Part shown: piece by piece, positions 6,601-61,490 of the stretch | Layout of the letters: each line of letters opens with the position of its first letter | How positions within the stretch are numbered: position 1 is the first letter of the stretch | NCBI GenBank assembly: GCA_051294905.1 | Contig: CM119372.1 | Span: 12,772,001 to 12,836,000 of the forward strand | Source of the DNA: Botryllus schlosseri | Lineage: Eukaryota | Reading direction: 5' to 3' | Length of the DNA: 64,000 nucleotides | The notes under the pieces: generated by a model | The model's database searches: none | What the model saw: the letters and a program-made list of their open reading frames with translations, nothing else | Told to the model about the DNA's origin: nothing | Made by a program: the position numbers and the translations under genes

Positions 6601-9600
6601 CTCTAACTAGTTTTGACGTGTCTTGAATTTGGTCACCTTTACTTGTTATTTAGCAGAAATTCATGGCGGAACTTTTATTTCTACTCGTGTAGCTGTCGCG
6701 GTGGTCAAAGTATAGTTTTCCAAGTAGAAATGAGGATTTTGGGTGCGAAAAGGCGCGACCGTTCGCTCACCTTTGCTTGCTGCAGCATGCGGTTCCTTGC
6801 TTTTATCTGCTCTCTGATGAAAGTCTTTCGGAAAGTATAGTAAGGATGAAGCTCGTGGGAAGGTTCCAAGAACGCGAGCAGGGCGTCCTTGCGTTCCCGC
6901 ATGCTTTGCTCAACACCGTCGCCTTCCTCAGCAATTTGTCTGCGACGGACATAGAATTGTCAGCGTCAGAGTAAAATACCACAAGAAAACGGCAATGTCA
7001 GGTCAGCAGTGAGATCGTGTCGGCAAACTGCAGGCGTCGATAAAATCGCGACAGCTTACTTCATCAACTCTGCTATGCTTAGACAACAGGCAGATACCGG
7101 CGACAAGAACAACTTGTCTACAAATCATAGGCATTGGAAGACATTTTTGGAGGTACGGGACTCCAGTATACAATTGAATAATTCATTTGTATTGAAATAA
7201 ACCTGTATATTATCGGCTGACACTCATCAGGGGTAGTCGTCAGCAACTAGGAGATACTTCAAAGGTATATCAACAATGGTATCACCAAATACGATGTCAC
7301 CCGCATGAAAATTCAAGTAATCACGGCGAACAGCCATCTGCTACACTTATATATACTAAATCATCTGTAACAGAGACATTAAACCATGTTATGAAGGGAC
7401 AATGAATTAGGTGTCTGCAAACATAAGGGACAATAGGACATGCAACATTTGAGCATGTGGGATAAAGTTGAATTAGGTTTACGGTTTATTTTGCGGTATG
7501 GGTTGTGGTTAGGGTTAGTGGGGGGCTACGAAGTCACATGCTAAACTGTCGATTTTCATTGCGTCGCATGCTCAAATGACAGGCGGCCAAAGTATGACCT
7601 ACAGTTGTTTCAAATTTATAAAGGAAATCAATTCGATCCAATTAATACGACTGCACAAGTCTCTGTCGCTAACGCATAAAAGCCAAACCACTAACTTCGC
7701 AACGCTGTCCACCATGGGTTGAATGTCTGGCGGCGGTGGCACGATCACCATCGCCGCTTCCTGTGGCGTAATGCTGGGGGGCAGCGCGTCCTGATCCCGC
7801 AAAGTCAACGGGCTTGATGAGGCACTCGAGTTTCGACTTGCGCTCTCCATGAATGCCGGTAGCGGTGGCGGCTCCAACGAATTTTCTTTGTCTAAACGCA
7901 CAGATGCGGCAAATACCAGAGATGAGCGCATTAAACATTTTCAAATCCAAATCCAGAATTTATCTTGTATCACGCTTAAATCTAAGTACATACACGGTAA
8001 TGACTTTAAAGTCGCTCGAAAATCGTAAATTGTCAAAAATTCCATGTCCCAGTCCACGTCTAAATCTAGCTCCAGAGAAATCATGAACCTCAAACCGATC
8101 TTAATCAGGTTTTCTCTACCAAATCATCTCTGGTGAAAAACAAAACAGGAAGTCACCCACCTGATGCGTGATTCTGCGTGGCTACTTTCATCAAGTTGTA
8201 CTGACGGAGGGCGTTCGCTTTTTTTCCTTTCTCGATCAGTTTCGCGAGCGGGTGATTGGGGTCGACTTTTTGAATGGCCTGTCACAAAAAGCGGGATGAG
8301 ATATTAATTTATTTCGTCAACCGACAAGGTAAAAAAGTAATGTCCAAATTTGCGGCACAAAACAACGCTCGATTGGTATCGGCTCATTGACTGGTACCGC
8401 TAATATGATCACGATTTTTGGGTCAACCAGAACCAGAGTAATTTCTTGTTCAAACTTTAAGTTAAAAAGAGATATTAGATCGTCATAGAACTTGCTGAAA
8501 ATATATGTAACACAGTGTTTTGTAAGAAAAGAGAAGTAAATTTTAATAAAAGAAAAAATAATATCAACTCAAACTACATTAATATGAATAAAATGTCATA
8601 CAGTCGTTGAGCAGTAATGATAAATACGAGGACGGAGAATACAAACACATCAATTAATGCACGTATGTTAGGGTTGTTCAGAATAGACCGACTTTCAAAA
8701 AGTCCAGGTTTTCAGTCCGATTCCCATGCCTTATACCTTGAAAACATATTCTGGCTACTTTTTTCTGTAACTCGTCCCCTGCATCCGTGTGCACATTGAG
8801 CTGGAAGAATAGCAGCTGAAAATAGGGGATTCCCCTAAAATCTGAGTGTCACGATTTTACCTAGCCTAGTTAAAGTGACATATAACATGGATTTATGCAG
8901 CTGTTGCGGTTTGGAGTGCTACAAAACCCCACTATATAAGGCATTCCTAGTTCAGGATATCATTTCCATGTCCTACACTGCCTTAGAACTGCTCAAAACT
9001 ACCTAAACCTGATAGTCATTTTGTTGGATCACATATCCTACACCCCTCAAACCTACCCGGCACTGTTCATCAATTTCCTGGATCCCCATGTGCAAGAATA
9101 CAACTGTAAATGTAACATCCACTCACAGCCACATAATAAACATCACAGGAAACGAAAAAATAAGGCAAAGAAAGAGATCAGCTTGGCGAAATATTACATA
9201 AATCAGGTGGATGAAATGGTTGATTTCGAGAAATCTGCATATCTGTTCCGGTGATCTTCCACAGCTTGTAGGAGGCTCGCTCGCTGTTTTTTTGTCATCA
9301 GTTATGAACGCAGCATAGTCGGTATTCAATTTTACCATACGCTCTGCTGCATAATAAAGTGCTACAGGAAAAGCACAGGCTGATGCATCATTTGAACTGC
9401 TTGAACTTTGAAATTTAACAAAATCTGTTAGAGCTCTTCTGTTTGACACAACATCCTCAAACACTGGTAAAAACAAAGGTGCGGTTCCGTTACTTGAAGA
9501 ATTGATTAACAGGAAAGTTTTCTACAATGCCTGTAGCCATCATATTTATGAACTGGTCATTGGAGAGGTTTGGAAGTGTTTGTTTGGATCGACAATCACA

Positions 9601-12600
9601 GGCCCTGAAAACACGGATTTTAATACCTTCAAGAAGAAGTGGAAATATATTGATAAATCAAGAAGCTATAAAACGCTGAAGTTTATTGAAGGCAGCTGGT
9701 TGGCGATGAAAGCTGATGAAGCAAAGCAAGAAATAATTCCACTGATGAAACCCAATGATGGAAAGCAGAAAGAAGTCTTGATAAGAGATGACTACAGAGA
9801 ATGTGCAACAGGCACCTTGGCGATTTTGGATGACAAATATGTTGATCATCGTTTTCGCAAGCCTGGTGCTACTCATAGCGCTAGATGGATGAGTCAAGTC
9901 CTGTACTGTCAAAAAATGTTCATGTGGAGTGAGCAAATGGACTATTCTGAAGAGTTCATTGAAAAGTTGGAACGAATCAATACATTCATTGCTTTGTTTT
10001 ATATTCCAGCTTGGTTGAAAACTGGTATTGCATGTGACGCACCTTGGAATGATCTCAAATTCCTTCATGACATGAAAAACTTTTCATTATGCGATCTCAC
10101 TGTTGCTGATGTGTCATACAAGAAATTGCCAAAACATCATTGGTATCTAACTGAGGAAATGGTGGTATTTACCACGTCCTCGGCTAATCCAAAGACTCCT
10201 GACAAACTGAAGGAAGCGATGGCTGCTAAATTGCTGAAAATGCCAATCCCTGAAAAATTTCGCAGAGGTATGCCTCTCAGTCTGATCTCTGACTCTGTCT
10301 CTGAGTCAATGAGTATGGTCGATTTGATTGCGCCAGAATCGTGGTTTCTATTTGATGCTATACATGTGGAACATGATTGGTTGAGTCTTCCAGTTTCGGA
10401 ATGGCATACTGATCCGGATTTCGTGACTGCTCAAGAATTTGTGAATACCGTTGAAGCAGAGCGTATGGTAAAATTGAATACCGAAAATGCTGCGTTCATA
10501 ACGGATGACAAAAAACAGCGAGCGAGCCTCCTACAAGCTGTGGAAGATCACCGGAACAGATATGCAGATTTCTCGAAATCAACCATTTCATCCACCTGAT
10601 TTATGTAATATTTTGCCAAGTTGATCTCTTTCTTTGCCTTATTTTTTCGTTTCCTGTGATGTTTATCATGTGGCTGTGAGTGGATGTTACATCTACAGTT
10701 GTATTCTTGCACATGGGGATCCAGGAAATTGATGAACAGTGCCGGGTAGGTTTGAGGGGTGTAGGATATGTGATCCAACAAAATGACTATCAGGTTTAGG
10801 TAGTTTTGAGCAGTTCTAAGGCAGTGTGGGACATGGAAATGATATCCTGAACCAGGAATGCCTTATATAGTGGGGTTTTGTAGCACTCCAAACCGCAACA
10901 GCTGCATAAATCCATGTTATATGTCACTTTAACTAGGCTAGGTAAAATCGTGACACTCAGATTTTAGGGGAATCCCCTATTTTCAGCTGCTATTCTTCCA
11001 GCTCAATGTGCACACGGATGCAGGGGACGAGTTACAAAAAAAAGTAGCCAGAATATGTTTTTAAGGTATAAGGCATGGGAATCGGACTGAAAACCTGGAC
11101 TTTTTGCAAGTCGGTCAATTCTGAACAACCCTAACGTATGTATACAAGGAATAAATATGAAATAAGGACAGAGTGCAAGCATTGAACAGCATTAGTATTT
11201 ACTTGATAGAAAGTCCAACACGCACGACTAGCGTAGAAGACGTCGACTCACCTTGAATTTTTCCTTTTTCTCCTCTTCCTCCCGCCTGTTTCTCTGAGCA
11301 TTGGCAAACAAGCTCGGATGCAGGTAGCCGCCCTCGTCGTCGCTGTCGGATTCCTGAAAATCACAGAATGAGCGAGCGCGTCAGGGACATCTCGCAAAGA
11401 AGCTAACCTCGTCTTCTTCCTCTTCCGGCACGTCGGTTTTTAGCGCCGGGGTGTGCTTGCCTTCCTTGATTCTTTTCAGCTGTATAACAATCGGAATATG
11501 AGTGAGCATGAGCAATTGAGCATGCAAACCAAATGCGGAAGAACTCCTGTATTCTTCGAGTTCTCGAGTTGGTTTTGCCTACTGACCCTACTTACTACAG
11601 TTTTTGAGGCAAAACTACAGGCGTTTTACAAGTTGGCGTTCGTTAAGTAGACTAAATGGAATATGTTTGTATCACTATTATGGGAGAAAGTGTCATCATA
11701 ACTGCAGGGCGAAATAGCCCCTGTATCAATATATATATATCGGCTTTCAATTAAATAAAAGGGCAAAAAGGGCCACTTCCCTGTATCAAGGCAACCGAGT
11801 GCATCAATTTGTACAGTTTTCAAGTCATTTTGGGTCAGTCACAAAAATCAGCCACCCCCCATTATATGCTCCCCGACCAAAACAACCTTTTTCAACTAGC
11901 CACTTCTGGCGCCTCCATTTTCTACTTTACTTAAATTAGTTTTGACAAGTCTCGGAAACCGTTACTTCCGCATGTAATTGATTACAAATTTACAGTGTTA
12001 CTTTTACCAAAAGACTGCGCACAGTTTGCGACTGAATGTTTTGGGGAAGAAAGAAGACCCGGGTAAGGCTTAGATAAAATCGCGTTGCGTAAAAATATCA
12101 AGATAAAGTTGAACATCATATGCAATACAATATTCTAGAGCAGTGTTTCGCAACGTTTTCGACTCATCGCCCTCTTACAAATCTCGACAAAAATTTCTGC
12201 CCCCCATATTTACGGACTCGAAAAAGAGGACATCGGGAAATAGATTCACCTAACTCTGATCGCAGGTGAATTTACTAAAAAAAGGTCATTTTCCGAGGTG
12301 GTAGGTGCTCGGAAAACCAGTTTCCGCGTCTACTTCCCATTGAGTAGACCTTTTTTCGCGTCATATGCAGAATAAGCCGTCTTCACCTGCATTTTTTTAC
12401 CGTGTTAATTAAATATATCTCACAAGACGATCTAACATTTCCTATCGCTCCTCTGGTATTTTCGTACCCTCGTTTCTCAAAATCGCCCACTGGGGAGCGA
12501 TACCGCCCACGCTTGGAATGGGAACCACCGTTCTAGAGTCAACATCGTTGTGTCTATATTCGTCAAACGCCAACCGTTTACTCACCACGTGCTTGTAGTA

Positions 12601-15210
12601 GGGGTTCAAGTAGTGATCGAAGTCCAAAAACAGAAATTGACTGTTGTTGGCCTGTTTCGCTTTCAGTATAATTTCCATTTGAACACCCTGCTTGCTTACG
12701 AACATCGCCGTCTTCTCAATGATAGCGTGCATCTTTTCCGTCGGAGGCTGGAAAAGCAGCATGCATGAGCGCCGGTTTAAACAGCCAGGACGGCATGTCC
12801 AGCTTATAGTGCTACACCTGACCACCATCTACAGAAGCAGTACAGCGTACATATTTGGAAATGAGCACAGATGAGATTTTTAAATCTTGCTCTATAAGGC
12901 CATTGAAATAGGACAAAGTTTCTCATAACATTCAATATTTTAATGTAAAGAATCATTAATCGGATTTGGGCATGATATGAATTGAACTTGCGATTAGTAT
13001 TTGCATATGTTACTGTTCATTTCAGGTAAACAGGCGTCGAGAGGATACAGTGGTAACTCACAATTTCCATTCGAGGGGGGATTGCAAGCGACTCTGGAGC
13101 CATAAATGGCCTTTCCTCCTCGTCATTTTTATCGCCGCCCTCTACTGGTTGATCGGTGGTGACCGGGTCTGTACTTTTCTGTTCGCCATTTGTAGTATCG
13201 TAGTTGAACGCGACCTGATTGAAGGAATCCCCGCCTTCGATCGACGCATGCAGCCTCTTCAATTCTTCCTCTGCGACAAGGACAGCTAAACTAACTTTCT
13301 ACTCTGACACCTCAGGCAAAAATTCTGATCATACACAAAGAAAATATGTTAGCATTCCTACACATTTTTATATATTATTTCCTCCGAATAGCTTTAGAAG
13401 CCAAAATTACGATGTCATGTTACAATTTATTTCAAGCAGTTTTAGAGAGCGAGATCGCTACAATCAAACTGTGGGTTATAGTTACCTTGCCGTATCACAA
13501 GTGGAGTACCGGCACCATATATATATGAGCTCACGATTTGAAACAGGTTGCCATTGTCAACATAGACAAATCACATTTCTACATTTCAAATTTGATTCAC
13601 CATTTTACTGACATTCACTACCTACGAAAGTCAGTTAAAAATCTTTAGGTGAATAAATCAACAGTATGTATCTATTGTTCCGTGTAATTTTGACAGCTAT
13701 GTTTAATTTTGCATCAATTCTTGTAATCCTCTACTTCCTTAAATCGCAACTCCCATTCATAACTTTTGAGAATTCTCTGGGACCATCGGGATAAACAGGT
13801 CGGCAACACATCTTCATCAAAATCAGAGCTAATACATCATATATTCCGCATTAATTTTAAAGGCACCACTGGCAGCCTCCCATGCATTATTTTACAAATA
13901 TATAACACCATCATCCATCGGCTGTCATATTTACACTCACCATGTCTGAGTTTTTCTTCCGCTATATCAGTGTACATGGCCATGTATCTCTCTTGATCAC
14001 ATAGTTGCTCTATCCTGGCTTCCTCTTCCGAGATCTATATAAACCAAGTAGGATGTCCGTTCTGCTACATCTATATATCATTTATGATAAGCATGAGCAA
14101 CTCACATCGTAATCAGTATTCCACGAGTCTCCTTCAAAATCAGACAGATCATGTAACGACGCCCGTGCATCATATCTTAAATATACAATCGAACAAAGTC
14201 AGGCAGGAGAAGCAACAAAGGTAAATCAGAAGCGTCCTATGAAATTCGAGTTTCCGCACTACAGTTAAAAAGCTCTTCACAGGATTGTTGCTCCTGCCAA
14301 TTGGTCTTACCTGCGTTACAAGGACTAGACCTAACACGAAATCGACATGGCACATATACTGGTGCAAAATTTGTGAATTCAAATAAGTTCTGTCGGACAC
14401 CTATTGCAAAGGAATCCGTAATTCAGCTGACGACAACATATTTAATCTGCAGTGTGTCGTGGTGGGGTACTTTGACTCTGAGGCAAAAATAAAAACACCG
14501 GCAATGTTAGACAAAATGCACTTGCACAAAGGACACTATACATTTGCAATAAGGAAGACATCAAGAGAGTGGAGATTTTCTTCAATTTATAGAAGGAGAA
14601 GCATCAAGAGGATAGTAACTGAGTGTAATCAGTAACCAGTTCATCAATTCAAATTGAACTTGACACCAGGACAGAACCGCTCGTTTATACTAACAATGAA
14701 GCTCAGAAGTTAGGTGAAGAATTTGCAACAAATACATATTAAAAAAACATGAATATTAAAAGGAATTCGAACTTATACAAATAGGTAAACACACCACTGT
14801 CTAGGGCTCATGGACCTGCATTGACTCCCGATAACCGTTCCATTTTCTTCAGTCCGCTTCATGCAACACCGAGGGACCTTATTGTGTAATTTGACCTACC
14901 TTTGATCTTTGTTAGGCGATGCTCACCCGCCTAAAGGCTTCCGGGAGAGCTGACATTTACCCAATCAAAGTGCTGAAATCGAACATTGTCGGGGTACAAA
15001 ACCGGGAGGCAGTAAGAGTCACCTGTCGATCATGAGCTGTAGTTTTTCGTCGCCGTTCCATGGTATTAAATGACGGCCTTTGAAAATATCGCGCGAATGA
15101 TCATCGGGCGGAAATAGCTTGCAGGCATAACCGAACATCAAGAGCTCTTCTTCATTTTTCTCGGGAACGTTTTTCTTGACGTGCTTTTTTTGAAACTGGT
15201 ATCTTGATGT
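195..15210 (-). CDS. SFSWAP: Splicing factor suppressor of white-apricot homolog (multi-exon; DRY_EERY domain, two SURP domains, RS-rich C-terminus); 5' and 3' ends incomplete
   Basis: Hand-spliced exons, all phase-compatible: 15023-15210, 14106-14175, 13941-14034, 13062-13270, 12586-12747, 11408-11479, 11252-11353, 8161-8278, 7696-7891, 6771-6939, 5936-6143, 2515-2756, 1859-1975, 1383-1564, 508-651, 332-445, 195-272. Diagnostic motifs: [120 protein letters not shown]. The last four exon boundaries are less certain. Confidence 0.95.
818..841. repeat. (AG)n microsatellite; others at about 18341-18361 (AG)n, 19175-19215 (TC)n and 4085-4125 (TAGTA)n
   Basis: Visible directly in the sequence. 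Confidence 0.9.
912..1050 (-). mobile_element. tRNA-derived SINE family 1, 3'-truncated copy
   Basis: Reverse complement has an A-box (TAGTGTAATGG), a degenerate B-box and the core CAGACCAAAGAC..CTGGTATCC..GGCGCTCAGCAT shared with the copy at 16294. Confidence 0.75.
1383..2756 (-). CDS. SFSWAP: SFSWAP exons 2515-2756, 1859-1975, 1383-1564
   Basis: ..[22 protein letters not shown]|[13 protein letters not shown]|[13 protein letters not shown]; the last donor is AG|GCAAGG (GC). Confidence 0.82.
3150..5436 (+). CDS. STPG4: STPG4-like (sperm-tail PG-rich repeat / gonad-specific) protein, about 270 aa, 5 exons, nested in an SFSWAP intron
   Basis: Exons 3150 (or 3111)-3302, 3836-3986, 4217-4374, 4436-4611, 5262-5436. 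Collinear with vertebrate STPG4/C2orf61 as remembered: [104 protein letters not shown] at 5547-5552. Confidence 0.87.
5936..6143 (-). CDS. SFSWAP: SFSWAP exon ([12 protein letters not shown], acidic tract)
   Basis: atcag|GAG acceptor, AAAG|gtatcg donor; frame open throughout. Confidence 0.88.
6771..8278 (-). CDS. SFSWAP: SFSWAP exons 8161-8278, 7696-7891, 6771-6939 (SURP2)
   Basis: [14 protein letters not shown]..; ..[18 protein letters not shown]|[38 protein letters not shown]; phases 1/2/0 match. Confidence 0.92.
8669..11133 (+). mobile_element. hAT-superfamily DNA transposon derivative (probably hATm-like lineage) with about 680-bp inverted arms
   Basis: Ends TAGGGTTG...CAACCCTA; 8-bp TSD ACGTATGT at 8661-8668 and 11134-11141; arms 8669-9348 and 10455-11133 nearly identical in inverted orientation. 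Confidence 0.92.
9358..10599 (+). pseudogene. 5'-truncated DDE transposase (central and C-terminal part)
   Basis: Frame reads [30 protein letters not shown] (TGA at a position that is usually W), CSHH (CxxH), [35 protein letters not shown]-terminal DNA-binding region and first catalytic Asp are absent. Confidence 0.85.
11252..11479 (-). CDS. SFSWAP: SFSWAP exons 11408-11479 and 11252-11353 (54-nt intron)
   Basis: [24 protein letters not shown]|[23 protein letters not shown]. Confidence 0.9.
12141..12530. mobile_element. hAT (Charlie-type) MITE
   Basis: CAGTGTTTCGCAAC...GGGAACCACCG ends; TSD TTCTAGAG at 12133-12140 and 12531-12538; internal segment shared with about 39950-40120. Confidence 0.85.
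12586..12747 (-). CDS. SFSWAP: SFSWAP SURP1 exon
   Basis: [54 protein letters not shown]; ccag acceptor, gtgagt donor. Confidence 0.95.
13062..13270 (-). CDS. SFSWAP: SFSWAP exon ([32 protein letters not shown])
   Basis: gcag|AG acceptor, ATT|gtgagt donor; matches the SFSWAP linker before SURP1. Confidence 0.92.
13941..14175 (-). CDS. SFSWAP: SFSWAP DRY_EERY exons 14106-14175 and 13941-14034 (71-nt intron)
   Basis: [23 protein letters not shown]|[31 protein letters not shown]; GTGAGT donors, AG acceptors. Confidence 0.92.
15023..15210 (-). CDS. SFSWAP: SFSWAP exon, start of DRY_EERY domain
   Basis: ctag|ACATCA...ATCGACAG|gtgact; encodes [48 protein letters not shown]. No in-frame ATG upstream of the domain start. 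Confidence 0.93.
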
Positions 15211-23012: not shown

Positions 23013-25686
23013 GCGTAATCATAATAAAGAATATCGGTCTGGTTTAAATGACCATTGGAGTCGGAGAACCTCTCGAATACCACAAACAACAGCAGGCATT
23101 TGACATGGACGTGCAGCCGTGGCTATATACATACCCGATGCAGAACCTTCTGGTTCAATCAGACCAGCATACTCGATCCGCAGGTATATTCCTGAGCACA
23201 CATAGAAACAAATTCCTATAATTAATCGATTTGAACCCGGCTTCGGTCAATTAGTAAAGGAGCGTGGGTACAAATTAACATGTTCATTGCTCATACCGGA
23301 GCTGCTGGAATTTTTGTCGACGAATGCCTCGTCTCAATTGCGAATTTGCGAAGTACTTTCATATTAGGATCATTTCTGTACATTATTTACCACCGTTTAC
23401 ACACGTAGGACATCCAATGATGCCCCGACGCCGTTATCATATTATGTGATATAACTTCGTCACGATTTTTTTCTGACAAGACTTCTCCTCGCCGCCGCGA
23501 AATACGATGATGCGAAGCGATGTGAAATTGTTTCGTTCGGGGTCACGGATAAGCATGTTTATTCTATTACTTGAGTTTCGAAATATCTCTCCCCCTCCAT
23601 TCTATCTGGGCTTCTACGAAGAGATGGGCCTAATAGAGCCACTTATTTTAAAACTTTATGTATTTGATTTTGTAGCAGATTAGGTTAGACTTGGTGCGTT
23701 TGTCATATTCACTGCTTTTATCATGAATATTGCATATGGCCTTGGGAAAACGGAACATTGTTCTCAAACACAATCAAATACGCAAACATAAAAGCGCAGT
23801 ACCGCGAACTTATGACAAACTATATGTAGTTCCGCGGGTGCCAATTTAGCTAATGTAGGCGTATATTCCCCACCTCCAACTATATTCATGGCATTTCTTA
23901 GTTCTTACACAGAAGGTATAAGTGCAAAACGAATCCTAGATCTGATTTTAATATTATGTACTTGTAAGGCAACATGATCACACTGCAAGATACTAGATCA
24001 AATATTTTCGGAGATAGTATTCACACTCGTCTGAATATGAGATTCATCCAAGAACGGCAGGTCAGTCCTGAGGGGATTAATTAAAATATTAACGGTCGTC
24101 TCCAGAATGACCTTCATACAACGAGAAATATTTGTCGATTAACTATATTTGTAATGTGATATAGTCAGGGTTGCCATACCGTCCTTATTTCTAAGATTTG
24201 TCCTTATTTTGAAGGGTCATGTCTTAGAAATCTCAACTGTCCTTATTTCTAAGAAATGTCCTTATTTTCGACTTGCGTCCTTATTTTGTCTTATTTTTAA
24301 CCACTACAGAACTCCGATCGTTTTCCTCTGATATCTGTGTTGCATATTATTCTAAAATTATGCTTTTGCGTGGAGATTTTATGACATCATAAATGAAAGG
24401 AACTCTCGTGTCGTACACATCACAAGATTTGACTTCTAAGTGGTGAGATAGCTAGGGCAGTGGGTGGTATAGCAGTTTCGTGAGTACCAAGCTACCGCAG
24501 CGGACGTCATGTTAGCAGTAAACAGCAGTACCAGGTTCCTGCTTTTTGGTCTACAGCAGAATAAGCTCAAGCTGTGGCCTGTGGGGAAGGCAGCATTTAT
24601 TGCTCAGTGCAAAAGGCGAAGGGCAGTCGACACATTGATTAAACAGTAGTAAAGCTATAAATCTTTGATATATTTATCTAAATTATACTGCACTTGCGCA
24701 TATAGTTTTAGCTACTAATAACGCTAAATCTGATTAGTTAAAATGAGCAGGCGTAAAAACGTTTTTCATGACGATTAGGAGAGAGAATTAAAAAATATCT
24801 AACGAGGCTTGAAGGCGAGTGTTTCGCACATTGCAATATCTGCCACTGCGACATTAACCTGGAGGCTATGGAAAAGACCGCTATTTCAACTCACATTGGT
24901 ACCCCAAAACACAAGAAGCGTGTCATAATAATTAATTTGAGCCAGTCCATGAATAATTTTTCCACTAGTCGATCAACACCAACGACCACAGACTACAAGG
25001 CAGCTGCTGCTGAGGGTAGCTGGGCATTCCATACTGTCAAACAGGGCTGTGGAGTCGGTAAATTTTACCACCGACTCCGGCTCCGACTCCGACTGCACAC
25101 ATTTTCAATATACCGACTCCGACTCCGACTCCGACTCCTGGGTTTTTAAACGTACCGACTCCGACTCCGACTCCCGACTCCGACTCCAGCATTATTATCA
25201 ATTTACTGCGAAAATTATATGCCACATTGTCGGCTGAATGACTATCATACAACCATTAAACATATGCAAACATATGATTAACTGTGGCATTGTGGCACAG
25301 CTCGAATTATCCACTATATGCAATTAACATGAAATAAAGATTTGCTAAATATCCTTCCTTATTCAAATTTTTATAACATGGACTCTCTAATATCCTGAAA
25401 TGTATGAATCATTCAAATATGGCAGATATCCAATCCTGTAAAATAAAAATGTAGATAAAAAATCCAAGTGCAGCTCTTGTGTATGACTCAGCAACTAATA
25501 AAGAAATTGAACTTACTAATTTTGTCATTGCACACTATCCTGATTACAAGCACAAACACTCTTACTACTAATAATAGACATTGGTCATAAATGGAATTTA
25601 GTTAAGTAGTCAAAGACCATAGCCTATGTCTTGTCTACATGTACTTAATCAAGTATTCAAGGATTGGGACTTGCAGTCTTTCTTAA

Positions 25687-26450
25687 AGGGGCACTGCACT
25701 CAAAAAATGATGTGGTCTCAAATTGAAGAGCAGAACGAAAAAAAAATTTTGGCCGCAGCCGTTTTCTTCAGAACGCCACCGTAATGGAGCTGCAATTTAT
25801 TGAAATTTCCAGAGTTGCAGCAGTCGCGGCTCCGGATAATCTCTTAACCCGTTACATGGCACGATGACTTCATCGTCGCACTTGCTCGACGCGATTACGC
25901 AGTCACGCAGAGGACGAGCTTCAGATAGTTGTCAGCCGATGTTCTGAAGCAAATATGTCTAACAAATATCATGTATCTGTATCTTCCGCAAGACCACTAC
26001 TCCAAAGGTTGTGCACTGTGCAGTCAATAATACATCTTGAAAATGACAGCTGTATCTGCATCAATATACAACTGTAACGGCATCTCAGTATCATTCAACT
26101 GGCAAATACTATAGAGTCGTGACAAGCTCCAGACACAAATCCTCCTGACCTAACACCGTACGTTGAGCGCCGCCTTGGTGTGCAAGACATGAGTCATTCA
26201 TAACATCGACTGACAACTATCTAAAGTTCGTCCTCTGCGTAATCGCGTCGAGCAAGTGCGACGATGAAGTCATCGTGCCATGTAACGGGTTAAGAGATTA
26301 TCCGGAGCCGCGACTGCTGCAACTCTGGAAATTTCAATAAATTGCAGCTCCATTACGGTGGCGTTCTGAAGAAAACGGCTGCGGCCAAAATTTTTTTTTC
26401 GTTCTGCTCTTCAATTTGAGACCACATCATTTTTTGAGTGCAGTGCCCCT
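25687..26450. mobile_element. Kolobok-like non-autonomous element with about 250-bp TIRs
   Basis: TTAA|AGGGGCACTG...CAGTGCCCCT|TTAA (RR..YY termini, TTAA TSD); arms about 25687-25943 and 26202-26450 nearly identical. Confidence 0.8.
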
Positions 26451-26710
26451 TTAATCATTTGTTTGACCCAAACAGCTAAGCTACACTACAAATATTTTTA
26501 ATTTTGTCAAGTGGGAAGCATCGTTTGGTCATATTTACATCATTTTTACAATTTTACAAAACCAGCCGATGCATTTTCTCTGTCACAGTATCATGGTATA
26601 ATTCCAAAAATTGTATCAATTTTTACTGCATCGCGAAAACGCATATTGCGATTTTCTTCCCCTGTGCAAATGAGTTGTAATTTGCAACTAATGTCTAATT
26701 TTATCTATAT

Positions 26711-32416: not shown

Positions 32417-32734
32417 GCTTATGCACTCGGCTGCATCCGATCCCAAATTCACGAACGAAAGTCTGGCATGACAAGAGAGTATTTGCAAGAGGGTAAATTT
32501 TGTATTGAGACACGGACATTACCACGCTGTATAGGACCATAGCATACTTCTTCTAGGGTAGATACAGAGATGAAATTCGTCGTTTTCAGTCCGTGAGCCA
32601 CATTCGGAGGCTAGTACTAATACATGTAAATATTCCGCTGTCTGCTGTTTGCTCGTGGTATATAGCCTTTAGTGCGGGGCGGATCGACGAATTCTCTGGT
32701 CCGACTCCAATCAATCAATCAGGTTTATTAATAT

Positions 32735-39483: not shown

Positions 39484-41080
39484 CAGTGGTTCCCAACCTT
39501 TTTCGACTCATCGCCCTCTTATCAAGCTCGTCACAAATTTTCGCCCCCAATATGTTGCGGATTTTGCGGAGCATGGACCGGAGCCGGATTGGATATCTGG
39601 CCGGATTTTTTCAATTTTTGCCGAAGCGGATCGGAGCCGGATCAGTACTTTTTCGATACGGCCAGAATCTTTATGGATAAGCATAACTTTTGTAACTAAA
39701 TAACTACCAACCAACCACACGCTACTAACCACCAAGCCAGTGCGAAAAGAAACGAGCCATATTCATAAATTCACGGAACCATAGTACCATGTAGGGTCGG
39801 ATTTTCGGCCGGATCCGGATCGGAGCCGGATCAGTACTTTTTCCTGTTGCGGTCGGAGCCGGACCAGAGAATTGAAAAACCGGATCGGAGTCGGACCAGA
39901 GAATTTGTCGATCCGCTCCGCTCTATAATATATATACGGGAAATTTATTCAATTACCTCTGATCACTGGTGAATTGACTAAAAAGATGTCATTTATCCGA
40001 GTAGGTGCTCGGAAAACCGGTTTCCGCGTCTACTTTCCATTGTGTTTACCTTTTTTTTTGTCAACTTTCGCGCCATATGCAGAATAAGCAGTCTTCACGT
40101 GCATTTTTGCCCGTGGTAATTAAATGGGGAAGAGGTGTTCCGATGAGACACTGGGACCAAAAATACTTGAAAAATTGTCTATGATAATCCCATGATGACA
40201 CTCCGTGAATTTTTCTACAATTGCATGCTGGCGGAATCTTTCCCCACAGGCAAAGAACTTCGACCTGTATGAGTTATGGGGTCTCTGACAGATGTTTTTT
40301 TTTTTGGGGGGGGGGGGGGGGGGTTGTAAAATATATTTCGATCGATGCATTCACTTTTCTTTGTAACATTCAGCACGAACAAACCTAACAATAAATTTTA
40401 TTTCGAAGTGTAAGGCTTGTACCATGCTATATAACGGCACATATTTTTTATTCAATACCATCCTTGCGAGGCCAATGATACCATAATTCAGGCAAAATAG
40501 TTGGACTAACTAGTCATGTCACAACAGAAACACGCCTGTACACATTGGCGCTGTATTTAATAATTACCTGCGTAATGTTTTATCTCTATAATGAGCTATT
40601 TGGAAGTCAAAATATCGATTTACGGGCAATGTGTATGTACCCTCAAATTTGTAAGTTTGCGCTTAAATCGAAACCTAATTTTATGGCAACATTTGAGGTA
40701 TTATTTATTCTATTTACTCGACGGTTGCGACCAAACATTCATTTTTGGCTTGCTGTAGCTTTTTAGATTATTTAACACAGCAAGAAAAGTTGAAACATTC
40801 GTGTTTTTGAGCGTATGTCTCATAGGTTCTCAGGTTGTGTTCCTTGCTACCCACCGGGTGGGGATCGATGATACGTTCGAGCAACAAATTTTGAGCGTTC
40901 ATAAATATTTTTTCAATTGGTGGATATTCATATCCGGTAAGTATAGCTTGTATCTACGTGTTGAGCCAGCAAAAGATCTGTTGTTATCGGCTGAAGATTT
41001 GGTGGTAAGAGATAATTTTGCAATTCTTGATCCATCGGTACCACATCTCCCCCCGATATCGCCCACGTTGGGAACCACTG
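39484..41080. mobile_element. hAT (Charlie-type) non-autonomous element with a nested GGATC/CCGGA-rich insert (about 39565-39925)
   Basis: CAGTGGTTCCCAAC...GTTGGGAACCACTG; TSD CTTTAGAC on both sides; YPQICKFALK..FMATFE remnant of the dimerization region; insert related to about 33120-33250. Confidence 0.85.
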
Positions 41081-54800: not shown

Positions 54801-55457
54801 GGTATATCATATTATGCGCGAAGGAAAAATCGCGAAGCTTCGCGACTACGGTTTGGCCAGTTTTTTCCTTGTGGGTGTCGTCGTAATTGGACAATTTCAG
54901 TTGCGTGAATGGAGCCGGTTATTTGTCGTCAAGCACAGTTAACCGGCCTTGTGCAGCGATTTGTCATCGGCGATTTTAAGATCACTTGCTATCTTGCGTT
55001 ACAGCTAATAAGTCATTTGGTATTGCGGGATACTTAACTATTGGAGCACTGTTTTCACAACTGATGTAAATAGACGTGAATCTGTTTATCGCGTGAATTG
55101 ATTCCGTTACCGCCGGATCTTCGTTGCGTGCAGAATAAAGAACTTGCTACAGCGAATTCGATCGAAAACTCAACTTTATGGTTTCTATATCCGTTCAGGC
55201 TCCTCCTGTGGTAATAGAACGCCGAAGGGATCTTACGCAAAGCGTATGCTATAATTAGCCATTTTTCGAACCATTACGATGCCCCACAATGCATTTAAAA
55301 TTCAATTCTGTATTCTCTCATTTTAAGTACAGTATTAGTCAGCACTGAATAATAATAATTATTAATATTGTCTGATGTACCATTTACTATCTCTCTAATT
55401 AGTGCCTCCAACTTCATATTGCTCTGGCTAATATATGCCATAGCTACTGTTATTGAG

Positions 55458-55620
55458 CTGCAACACCGATGGGTTGCGGGTTCGAGTCCGACCGAGGCCG
55501 ACTCCAGAATTCCTATACCTACGTGTTGGAGGTTTATCTAGGCTCCCCCTCGCCCTCTAATCCGCGTAAGCGGTGTCCTATAAAAAGCCTAGACGTGGGC
55601 CGTGCTACAAGTCGGCAGCT
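55458..55620 (+). mobile_element. tRNA-derived SINE family 2 copy
   Basis: B-box GGTTCGAGTCC followed by the family body. Confidence 0.75.
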
Positions 55621-61317: not shown

Positions 61318-61490
61318 ACCGACTTGTAGTACGGCCCATGACTTCTAGGCTTTTTAAGATACCGCTTACGCGGATCACGTGGCGAGGAGGAGCCTACAAC
61401 ACTTAGGTAGGAATTCTGGAGTCGGCCTTGGTCGGACTCGAACCAGCAAACCATTGGTGTCGCAGCTGTGGAACGTACCACTACGCCCTC
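61318..61490 (-). mobile_element. tRNA-derived SINE family 2 copy (best-preserved head)
   Basis: Reverse complement: GGCGTAGTGG A-box, GGTTCGAGTCC B-box, family body. Confidence 0.78.

Follow-up and report, generated by a model that had tools for sequence, protein, structure and literature searches.

A Botryllus schlosseri transposon with two right ends, probably formed by inward growth of a long terminal inverted repeat

A 64,000-nucleotide stretch of the Botryllus schlosseri genome (GenBank assembly GCA_051294905.1, contig CM119372.1, positions 12,772,001 to 12,836,000 of the forward strand; hereafter the window, with positions counted from its first letter) holds a transposable element of 2465 bp (8669-11133) that carries the sequence of its right (3′) end at both termini. 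The original prediction for this locus read it as a hAT transposon built from two right ends and mobilised as a unit, and took this to mean that the transposase of its lineage can work on two right ends. Does the structure call for such a rule, or could it have arisen from an element with the ordinary ends of its clade? We consider it likely that the element is a decaying, non-autonomous derivative of a hAT clade with long terminal inverted repeats (TIRs), in which the native TIR has grown inward through repair or recombination between the TIRs. It provides no evidence for relaxed end requirements in hAT transposons.

Structure of the element

The two arms, each 683 nt long and in inverted orientation, share 97.8% identity. 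The right arm (10452-11133, plus strand) comprises the last 49 codons of a transposase gene with their stop codon, 531 bp of 3′ non-coding DNA and the TIR; its inner edge falls inside the codons V/EAER, and it continues past the stop codon at 10600-10602. The left arm (8669-9351, minus strand) is this right end inverted, with the TIR, the 3′ non-coding DNA and the last 49 codons. The predicted inverted termini of about 680 bp with some 48 codons of the transposase tail are thus confirmed, at 683 bp and 49 codons each, as is the scattered divergence between them, which consists of 14 substitutions and one 1-bp indel (T7 versus T6), two of these differences lying at positions 17 and 27 from the tip, among the outermost 30 nt. 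The 49-codon segment of the left arm carries a frameshift from a 1-bp insertion, and the reverse complement of this arm reads TDY where the right arm reads TEN. Since the DY version is common to relatives such as P0001, it is the right arm that was altered after the duplication. Of the 15 differences, 5 lie in the innermost 70 nt, a clustering that was set aside as too weak to use (p roughly 0.01-0.05, post hoc).

The outer tips are bracketed by an 8-bp target-site duplication (TSD), ACGTATGT, at 8661-8668 and 11134-11141, and one intact TSD therefore surrounds the whole structure, as had been predicted. The chance of such a direct repeat at a fixed position is approximately 1.5e-5. Both ends of the element have the tip sequence TAGGGTTGTTCAGA, with TAGGG at each tip. 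The sequences on either side of the element are unique and unlike one another, the 64-kb window holds no further copy of any part of the element, and Tandem Repeats Finder (TRF) detected no tandem array within the arms.

Between the arms lies the expected 5′-truncated transposase pseudogene (9358-10602, plus strand), which corresponds to approximately residues 330-740 of full-length relatives. Positions 9358-10599 encode the C-terminal ~410 residues, with an in-frame stop codon at 9409-9411 and an open frame over 9412-10599. Full-length relatives have 740-820 aa; the window fragment aligns to residues 352-736 of one of them, P0033, with 45% identity (E 1.6e-92), and retains 49 of 56 highly conserved positions. 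Some 350 N-terminal residues are gone from the core, including the conserved HWDGK block that we take to hold the first catalytic Asp. The stop codon gained and the conserved residues lost in the open reading frame (ORF) are as expected for neutral decay.

The junction between the left arm and the core was placed with the help of L005, a decayed copy from an unrelated ENA assembly with 84.5% DNA identity to window positions 9358-10382, in which the transposase coding sequence runs uninterrupted upstream across the window's breakpoint. The window frame that starts at 9352 opens with two stop codons (TAATAA), followed by transposase homology from 9358. Because the homology to L005 also begins at 9358, the breakpoint is fixed at 9351/9358 and TAATAA (9352-9357, plus strand) is filler between the left arm and the truncated ORF.

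Superfamily and native ends of the clade

Sequence searches gave little help in classifying the transposase. The window fragment and ten relatives had no significant match in Pfam, with only chance-level hits far below the gathering cut-offs; the Pfam hAT C-terminal dimerisation domain and N-terminal BED finger were unmatched in all of them, and PDB sequences yielded no match even with profiles of 15 and 45 sequences. An AlphaFold2 model of P0033 was compared by fold; it was made from a 45-sequence alignment and had a predicted local distance difference test score (pLDDT) of 86.3. Against the PDB, ranks 1-11 were all Hermes transposase (E 1e-7 to 5e-4), and the P element transposase and RAG1 appeared only at E 4e-3 or worse. 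The best matches among Swiss-Prot models were KIAA1586, Ac, DAYSLEEPER, RICESLEEPER and ZBED proteins. The template modelling scores (TM-scores) of these fold matches, 0.3-0.5, indicate for the model a common fold with a divergent domain arrangement.

In transposases of the hAT superfamily a large helical insertion divides the RNase H-like core, and hAT termini carry the motif (T/C)A(G/A)NG. Three features, the Hermes/Ac-like fold predicted for the transposase, the 8-bp TSD and the TAGGG tips, assign the element to the hAT superfamily and bear out that part of the original prediction. The narrower label hATm, which the prediction also suggested, is used in papers only within annotation tables. 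In the fold search Hermes ranks far above the P element, which argues against a P-superfamily (THAP) transposase. The conserved motifs of the family are HWDGK, FDTTxxNxG, CRHH, ARWM and AER, all of which the window retains apart from the deleted HWDGK; by motif order they may correspond to the DDE triad (D180/D248/E572), CxxH and W319 of Hermes. The transposase family of P0033 and P0002 comprises 3,545 clusters at 50% identity (E 1e-3 or better) and is a very large animal family, unrecognised by Pfam, with a predicted Hermes/Ac-like fold. Its matches carry NCBI names such as hypothetical proteins of Artemia franciscana and Macrosiphum euphorbiae, and 'Cc8K15.2-like'.

The native ends of this clade were read from relatives found in protein and metagenome collections that did not include the genome under study. 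Six complete or near-complete relatives, from four other assemblies, have long inverted ends. Two come from ERZ25067590: L001 has the tip TAGGGGTGTTCAGA, the TSD GTGTATAC, a TIR of 323 bp (99% identity) and 600 bp between the stop codon and the inner TIR edge, and L002 has the tip TAGGGGTGTTCATA, the TSD ACGTTTGA, a TIR of 300 bp (97%) and a distance of 585 bp. Two more come from ERZ21736675, namely L012 (tip TA(A/G)ACCTGTCC, TSD CCGTACAC, TIR ~330 bp at 97%, distance 267 bp) and L013 (tip TAGGGTTGTTCAAA, TSD CTGCTCT(T/C), TIR ~433 bp at 94-96%, distance 503 bp). The element represented by L003 and L004 (ERZ24794434 and Logan ERR13292149) has the tip TAGGGGTGTCCAGA, differing flanks with no TSD, a TIR of 151 bp (85%) and a distance of ~300 bp. 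L008-L010 are Logan short-read contigs that end in a 56-nt inverted repeat before the tip and TSD are reached, with ~245 bp from the stop codon to its inner edge; contigs would end in this way if their assembly had stopped within a long TIR. TAGGG stands at the tips of L001, L002, L003 and L013, and TA(A/G)AC at those of L012.

The clade norm is thus one of long, near-identical TIRs (151-433 bp at 85-99% identity in the fully assembled relatives) that end well outside the ORF, with 245-600 bp between the inner TIR edge and the stop codon in all six. Short TIRs of about 10-25 bp with non-identical subterminal regions, a trait by which the hAT superfamily is defined, were found neither in the relatives nor in the window. 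Over its outer ~180 nt the window arm can be aligned with the TIRs of the relatives, and the window's inverted repeat reaches ~250-530 bp further inward than theirs, into the 3′ untranslated region (UTR) and the ORF tail. The junction at which the repeat extends is also where the left interior has been lost.

The arms and the TIRs of relatives also share a subterminal palindrome. It appears in the window as GGGGATTCCCC (8825-8835) and GGGGAATCCCC (10967-10977), each 157-167 nt from its own tip, left and right respectively, and these are the only two matches to the 11-nt pattern GGGGAWTCCCC in the window, one per arm (0.01 expected). The same pattern stands at a matching distance from the tip, 157-173 nt overall, in the TIRs of L001 (5307-5317 and 8657-8667), L002 (4311-4321 and 8072-8082), L012 (3451-3461 and 6510-6520), L013 (6719-6729) and L015 (5930-5940). 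It is probably a conserved binding site for the transposase or a host factor. The pattern, which matches a classical kappaB-type site exactly, is kept across elements whose transposases are only ~45% identical. In L001 and L002 the TIRs further contain several palindromes, TGACGTCA, that resemble the cAMP response element (CRE).

Origin of the extended repeat

The simplest account of the extended repeat is a single repair event. A break would have arisen in the left half of an ordinary left-right element, through excision and gap repair or through a replication break, and have been repaired from the wrong template. A 3′ end with left-TIR sequence would then pair with the identical right TIR of the same or a sister copy, and synthesis would proceed inward, leaving the TIR behind and continuing through 3′ UTR sequence into the tail of the ORF. 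Once released, this end would be joined in mid-ORF (around residue 330-350) to the other side of the break, with TAATAA as filler. Such an event would both remove the 5′ UTR with ~350 codons and lengthen the TIR, and the 2.2% divergence of the arms would have accumulated afterwards. Transposase provided in trans should still be able to act on the product, because the ends of the clade are natively alike over all the DNA that the transposase is likely to bind.

Several observations weigh against inward extension in this simple form. The invariant VVND before AER is absent from the core (window 10440-10452), which is 5 codons short where the spacing is fixed in 43 of 45 relatives; both defects lie within ~12 nt of the right arm's inner edge, a position that a single-junction model does not predict. 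This position could be due to chance (roughly 2-3%), or it hints at a second junction, whether by two template switches or because the arms and the core stem from different copies. There is no clean microhomology at the 9351/9358 junction: the CTCTG common to L005 and the arm would not yield the junction observed, and a 9-mer at the junction, CATAATAAA, recurs 218 nt upstream in the left arm, matches of this kind not being significant. Furthermore, we infer the native TIR length of the window's own family from relatives with at most 48% amino acid identity, and no autonomous or second copy of that family was reached outside this genome. The 389-aa fragment reached a top identity of 48%, with no same-family copy, among 5.8 billion proteins; among 1.84 billion cluster representatives the best full-length match had 46%, next to a 74% fragment that is L005. 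A junction-spanning 117-aa ORF on the minus strand had no match when searched, and JGI metagenome contigs gave none by protein or by tip pattern.

Two N-truncated copies of the P0001 cluster, L014 and L015, were considered as further right-right or extended-TIR derivatives and proved to be plain 5′-truncated copies. A palindrome in L015 (2147-2626; 232-nt arms, 16-nt spacer) adjoins the 5′ truncation point of that copy; it has no sequence in common with the hAT element and was rejected as derived from it.

Within the reading of inward TIR growth, the timing of the rearrangement is a question of its own. The element may have been rearranged at this locus after a normal insertion, so that the right-right form has never transposed, and we give this variant somewhat less than an even chance. 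Gap repair that follows excision, like intra-element conversion, leaves the derivative where its parent had inserted and with the parent's TSD, in line with the established models of synthesis-dependent strand annealing (SDSA) for P and Ac. The TSD therefore shows only that some ancestor inserted, and the claim that the present structure was mobilised as a unit does not follow from it, since a derivative born in place would retain it as well. The searched data hold one copy only, as birth in place would have it, but they exclude this genome and the single copy carries no weight. Moreover, the extended-TIR copies of Galileo, a P-superfamily element of Drosophila, are multi-copy (PMC3573991). 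On balance, the chances that the window copy moved after its rearrangement are about even.

A different explanation is that the family has native TIRs of at least 683 bp which include the ORF tail, the window copy being an ordinary internal deletion that starts within the left TIR and ends in mid-ORF. The deletion breakpoint would then account for the arm's inner edge, with no coincidence required, and near-complete Galileo copies do have the ORF end in both TIRs (PMC4168063). However, the TIR stops 245-600 bp short of the stop codon in the six relatives, none of which is a copy of this kind, and we consider the explanation unlikely.

We find it similarly improbable that the parent had non-equivalent ends and that a right-right chimera of it was transposed as a unit by a transposase working on two right ends. 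Right-specific coding DNA is certainly present in the left arm, the TSD around the whole structure is intact, and Hermes has asymmetric left and right ends (PMC10368747). Nevertheless, all relatives with readable ends have a left end equal to the right over 150-433 bp, the window arm has the same TIR architecture as theirs, and the TSD would also have been kept by a derivative born in place. The premise that hAT ends are non-equivalent thus stands for Hermes and fails for this clade, where they are alike over 151-433 bp in the relatives; two right ends are therefore no relaxation of a rule. What survives of the right-right description is the structure, a left arm that is an inverted copy of the right end with coding DNA included, and not a special use of ends.

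Finally, an assembly fold-back artefact or a pair of independent neighbouring insertions is very improbable. Although long inverted repeats are known to give rise to chimeric long reads, the two arms are distinguished by 15 differences, each flank is unique and unlike the other, and the outer tips have an exact 8-bp TSD that independent insertions would not share.

Genomic setting and relation to known elements

The host gene, a SURP-domain (SFSWAP-like) gene, lies on the minus strand; the element occupies one of its introns, with the transposase remnant antisense to it. An exon of this gene at 11252-11353 (minus strand, 34 codons) has a TTTTCAG acceptor and a GTGAGT donor, the element lying 110 nt from that donor into the following intron, and the Surp module is coded at 12445-12828. 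In the pre-mRNA the arms would pair into a hairpin of 683 bp, for which a duplex energy of -1283 kcal/mol was computed. As a matter of speculation, this hairpin could feed double-stranded RNA pathways or disturb splicing of the SFSWAP-like gene.

Other repeats occur elsewhere in the window. A separate foldback element at 25683-26454 is flanked by TTAA on either side, and its ends read AGGGGCACTG. Its arms are perfectly complementary over 220 nt and match at 81% over a further 64 nt, around a loop of ~220-330 nt; it looks like a miniature inverted-repeat transposable element (MITE) of the piggyBac or Kolobok type. Two pairs of inverted short-repeat copies (55456-55515 with 61408-61467, and 32658-32712 with 39883-39937) contain a tRNA-like B box, GGTTCGAGTCC, and are probably copies of short interspersed nuclear elements (SINEs).

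Internal-deletion derivatives of Ac/Ds, hobo and P arise from abortive gap repair with filler DNA, and Ac itself has 11-bp TIRs and asymmetric subterminal regions. The window element resembles these derivatives in being non-autonomous, in lacking the transposase's 5′ part, and in having a short filler and a retained TSD. It differs from the deletion class of Ds, which keeps the native left end, in that an inverted copy of the right end replaces the left interior (the Ds classes are listed in PMC3260210). Hermes (PDB 2BW3, 4D1Q, 8EDG, 8SJD; PMC10368747) is the best structural match of the family and also makes an 8-bp TSD. It has 17-bp TIRs, asymmetric subterminal repeats and a BED finger, in contrast to the 150-430-bp TIRs of this clade, with which it shares no detectable sequence similarity and in which no Pfam match to BED or hATC was found. 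The Drosophila Foldback (FB) elements and palindromic MITEs are alike in that inverted arms make up most of the element. The arms of FB, however, are tandem sub-repeats and its end chemistry is unrelated, whereas the window arms are unique sequence that includes coding DNA, and the loop between them is a 1.1-kb transposase remnant.

The closest parallel is with Galileo and its '2RT' copies. Both systems are cut-and-paste elements with natively long TIRs (seen here in the relatives only), and in both, sequence from inside one TIR, the ORF end included, is found inverted at the other end. Those copies whose TIRs are longest are non-autonomous, and the same cause has been proposed, an over-long copy made from the other TIR. 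For the extended or recombinant-TIR copies of Galileo, it has been proposed that one TIR was repaired from the other and that the tract copied exceeded the TIR in length (PMC3573991), and between 69 and >500 bp of the ORF end has been recruited into both TIRs, a feature termed so far unique to Galileo (PMC4168063). The two differ in that Galileo has a THAP/P-type transposase and a 7-bp TSD, against a predicted hAT fold and an 8-bp TSD here, and in that the window arms lack tandem sub-repeats. By this analogy, the window element can be regarded as the hAT counterpart of the extended-TIR copies of Galileo. The route from hATs to foldback elements that the original prediction put forward is therefore not new in kind, as inward TIR recruitment that includes the ORF end had already been published for Galileo.

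A broader possibility is that TAGGG-ended long-TIR hATs of this genome repeatedly become 3′-3′ palindromes that stay mobile, which we regard as conceivable but doubtful. If true, the right end alone would hold everything that the transposase needs, and such palindromes would seed foldback-like MITE families and put near-perfect hairpins of several hundred bp into introns. As a by-product, the analysis sketches a large animal transposase clade with long TIRs and a kappaB-like palindrome ~160 nt from each tip. The element itself would provide a clean case, among hATs, of a TIR growing inward and taking in the ORF end, a process documented so far for Galileo, and such growth offers one simple path by which cut-and-paste elements may move toward foldback-like, hairpin-forming derivatives.

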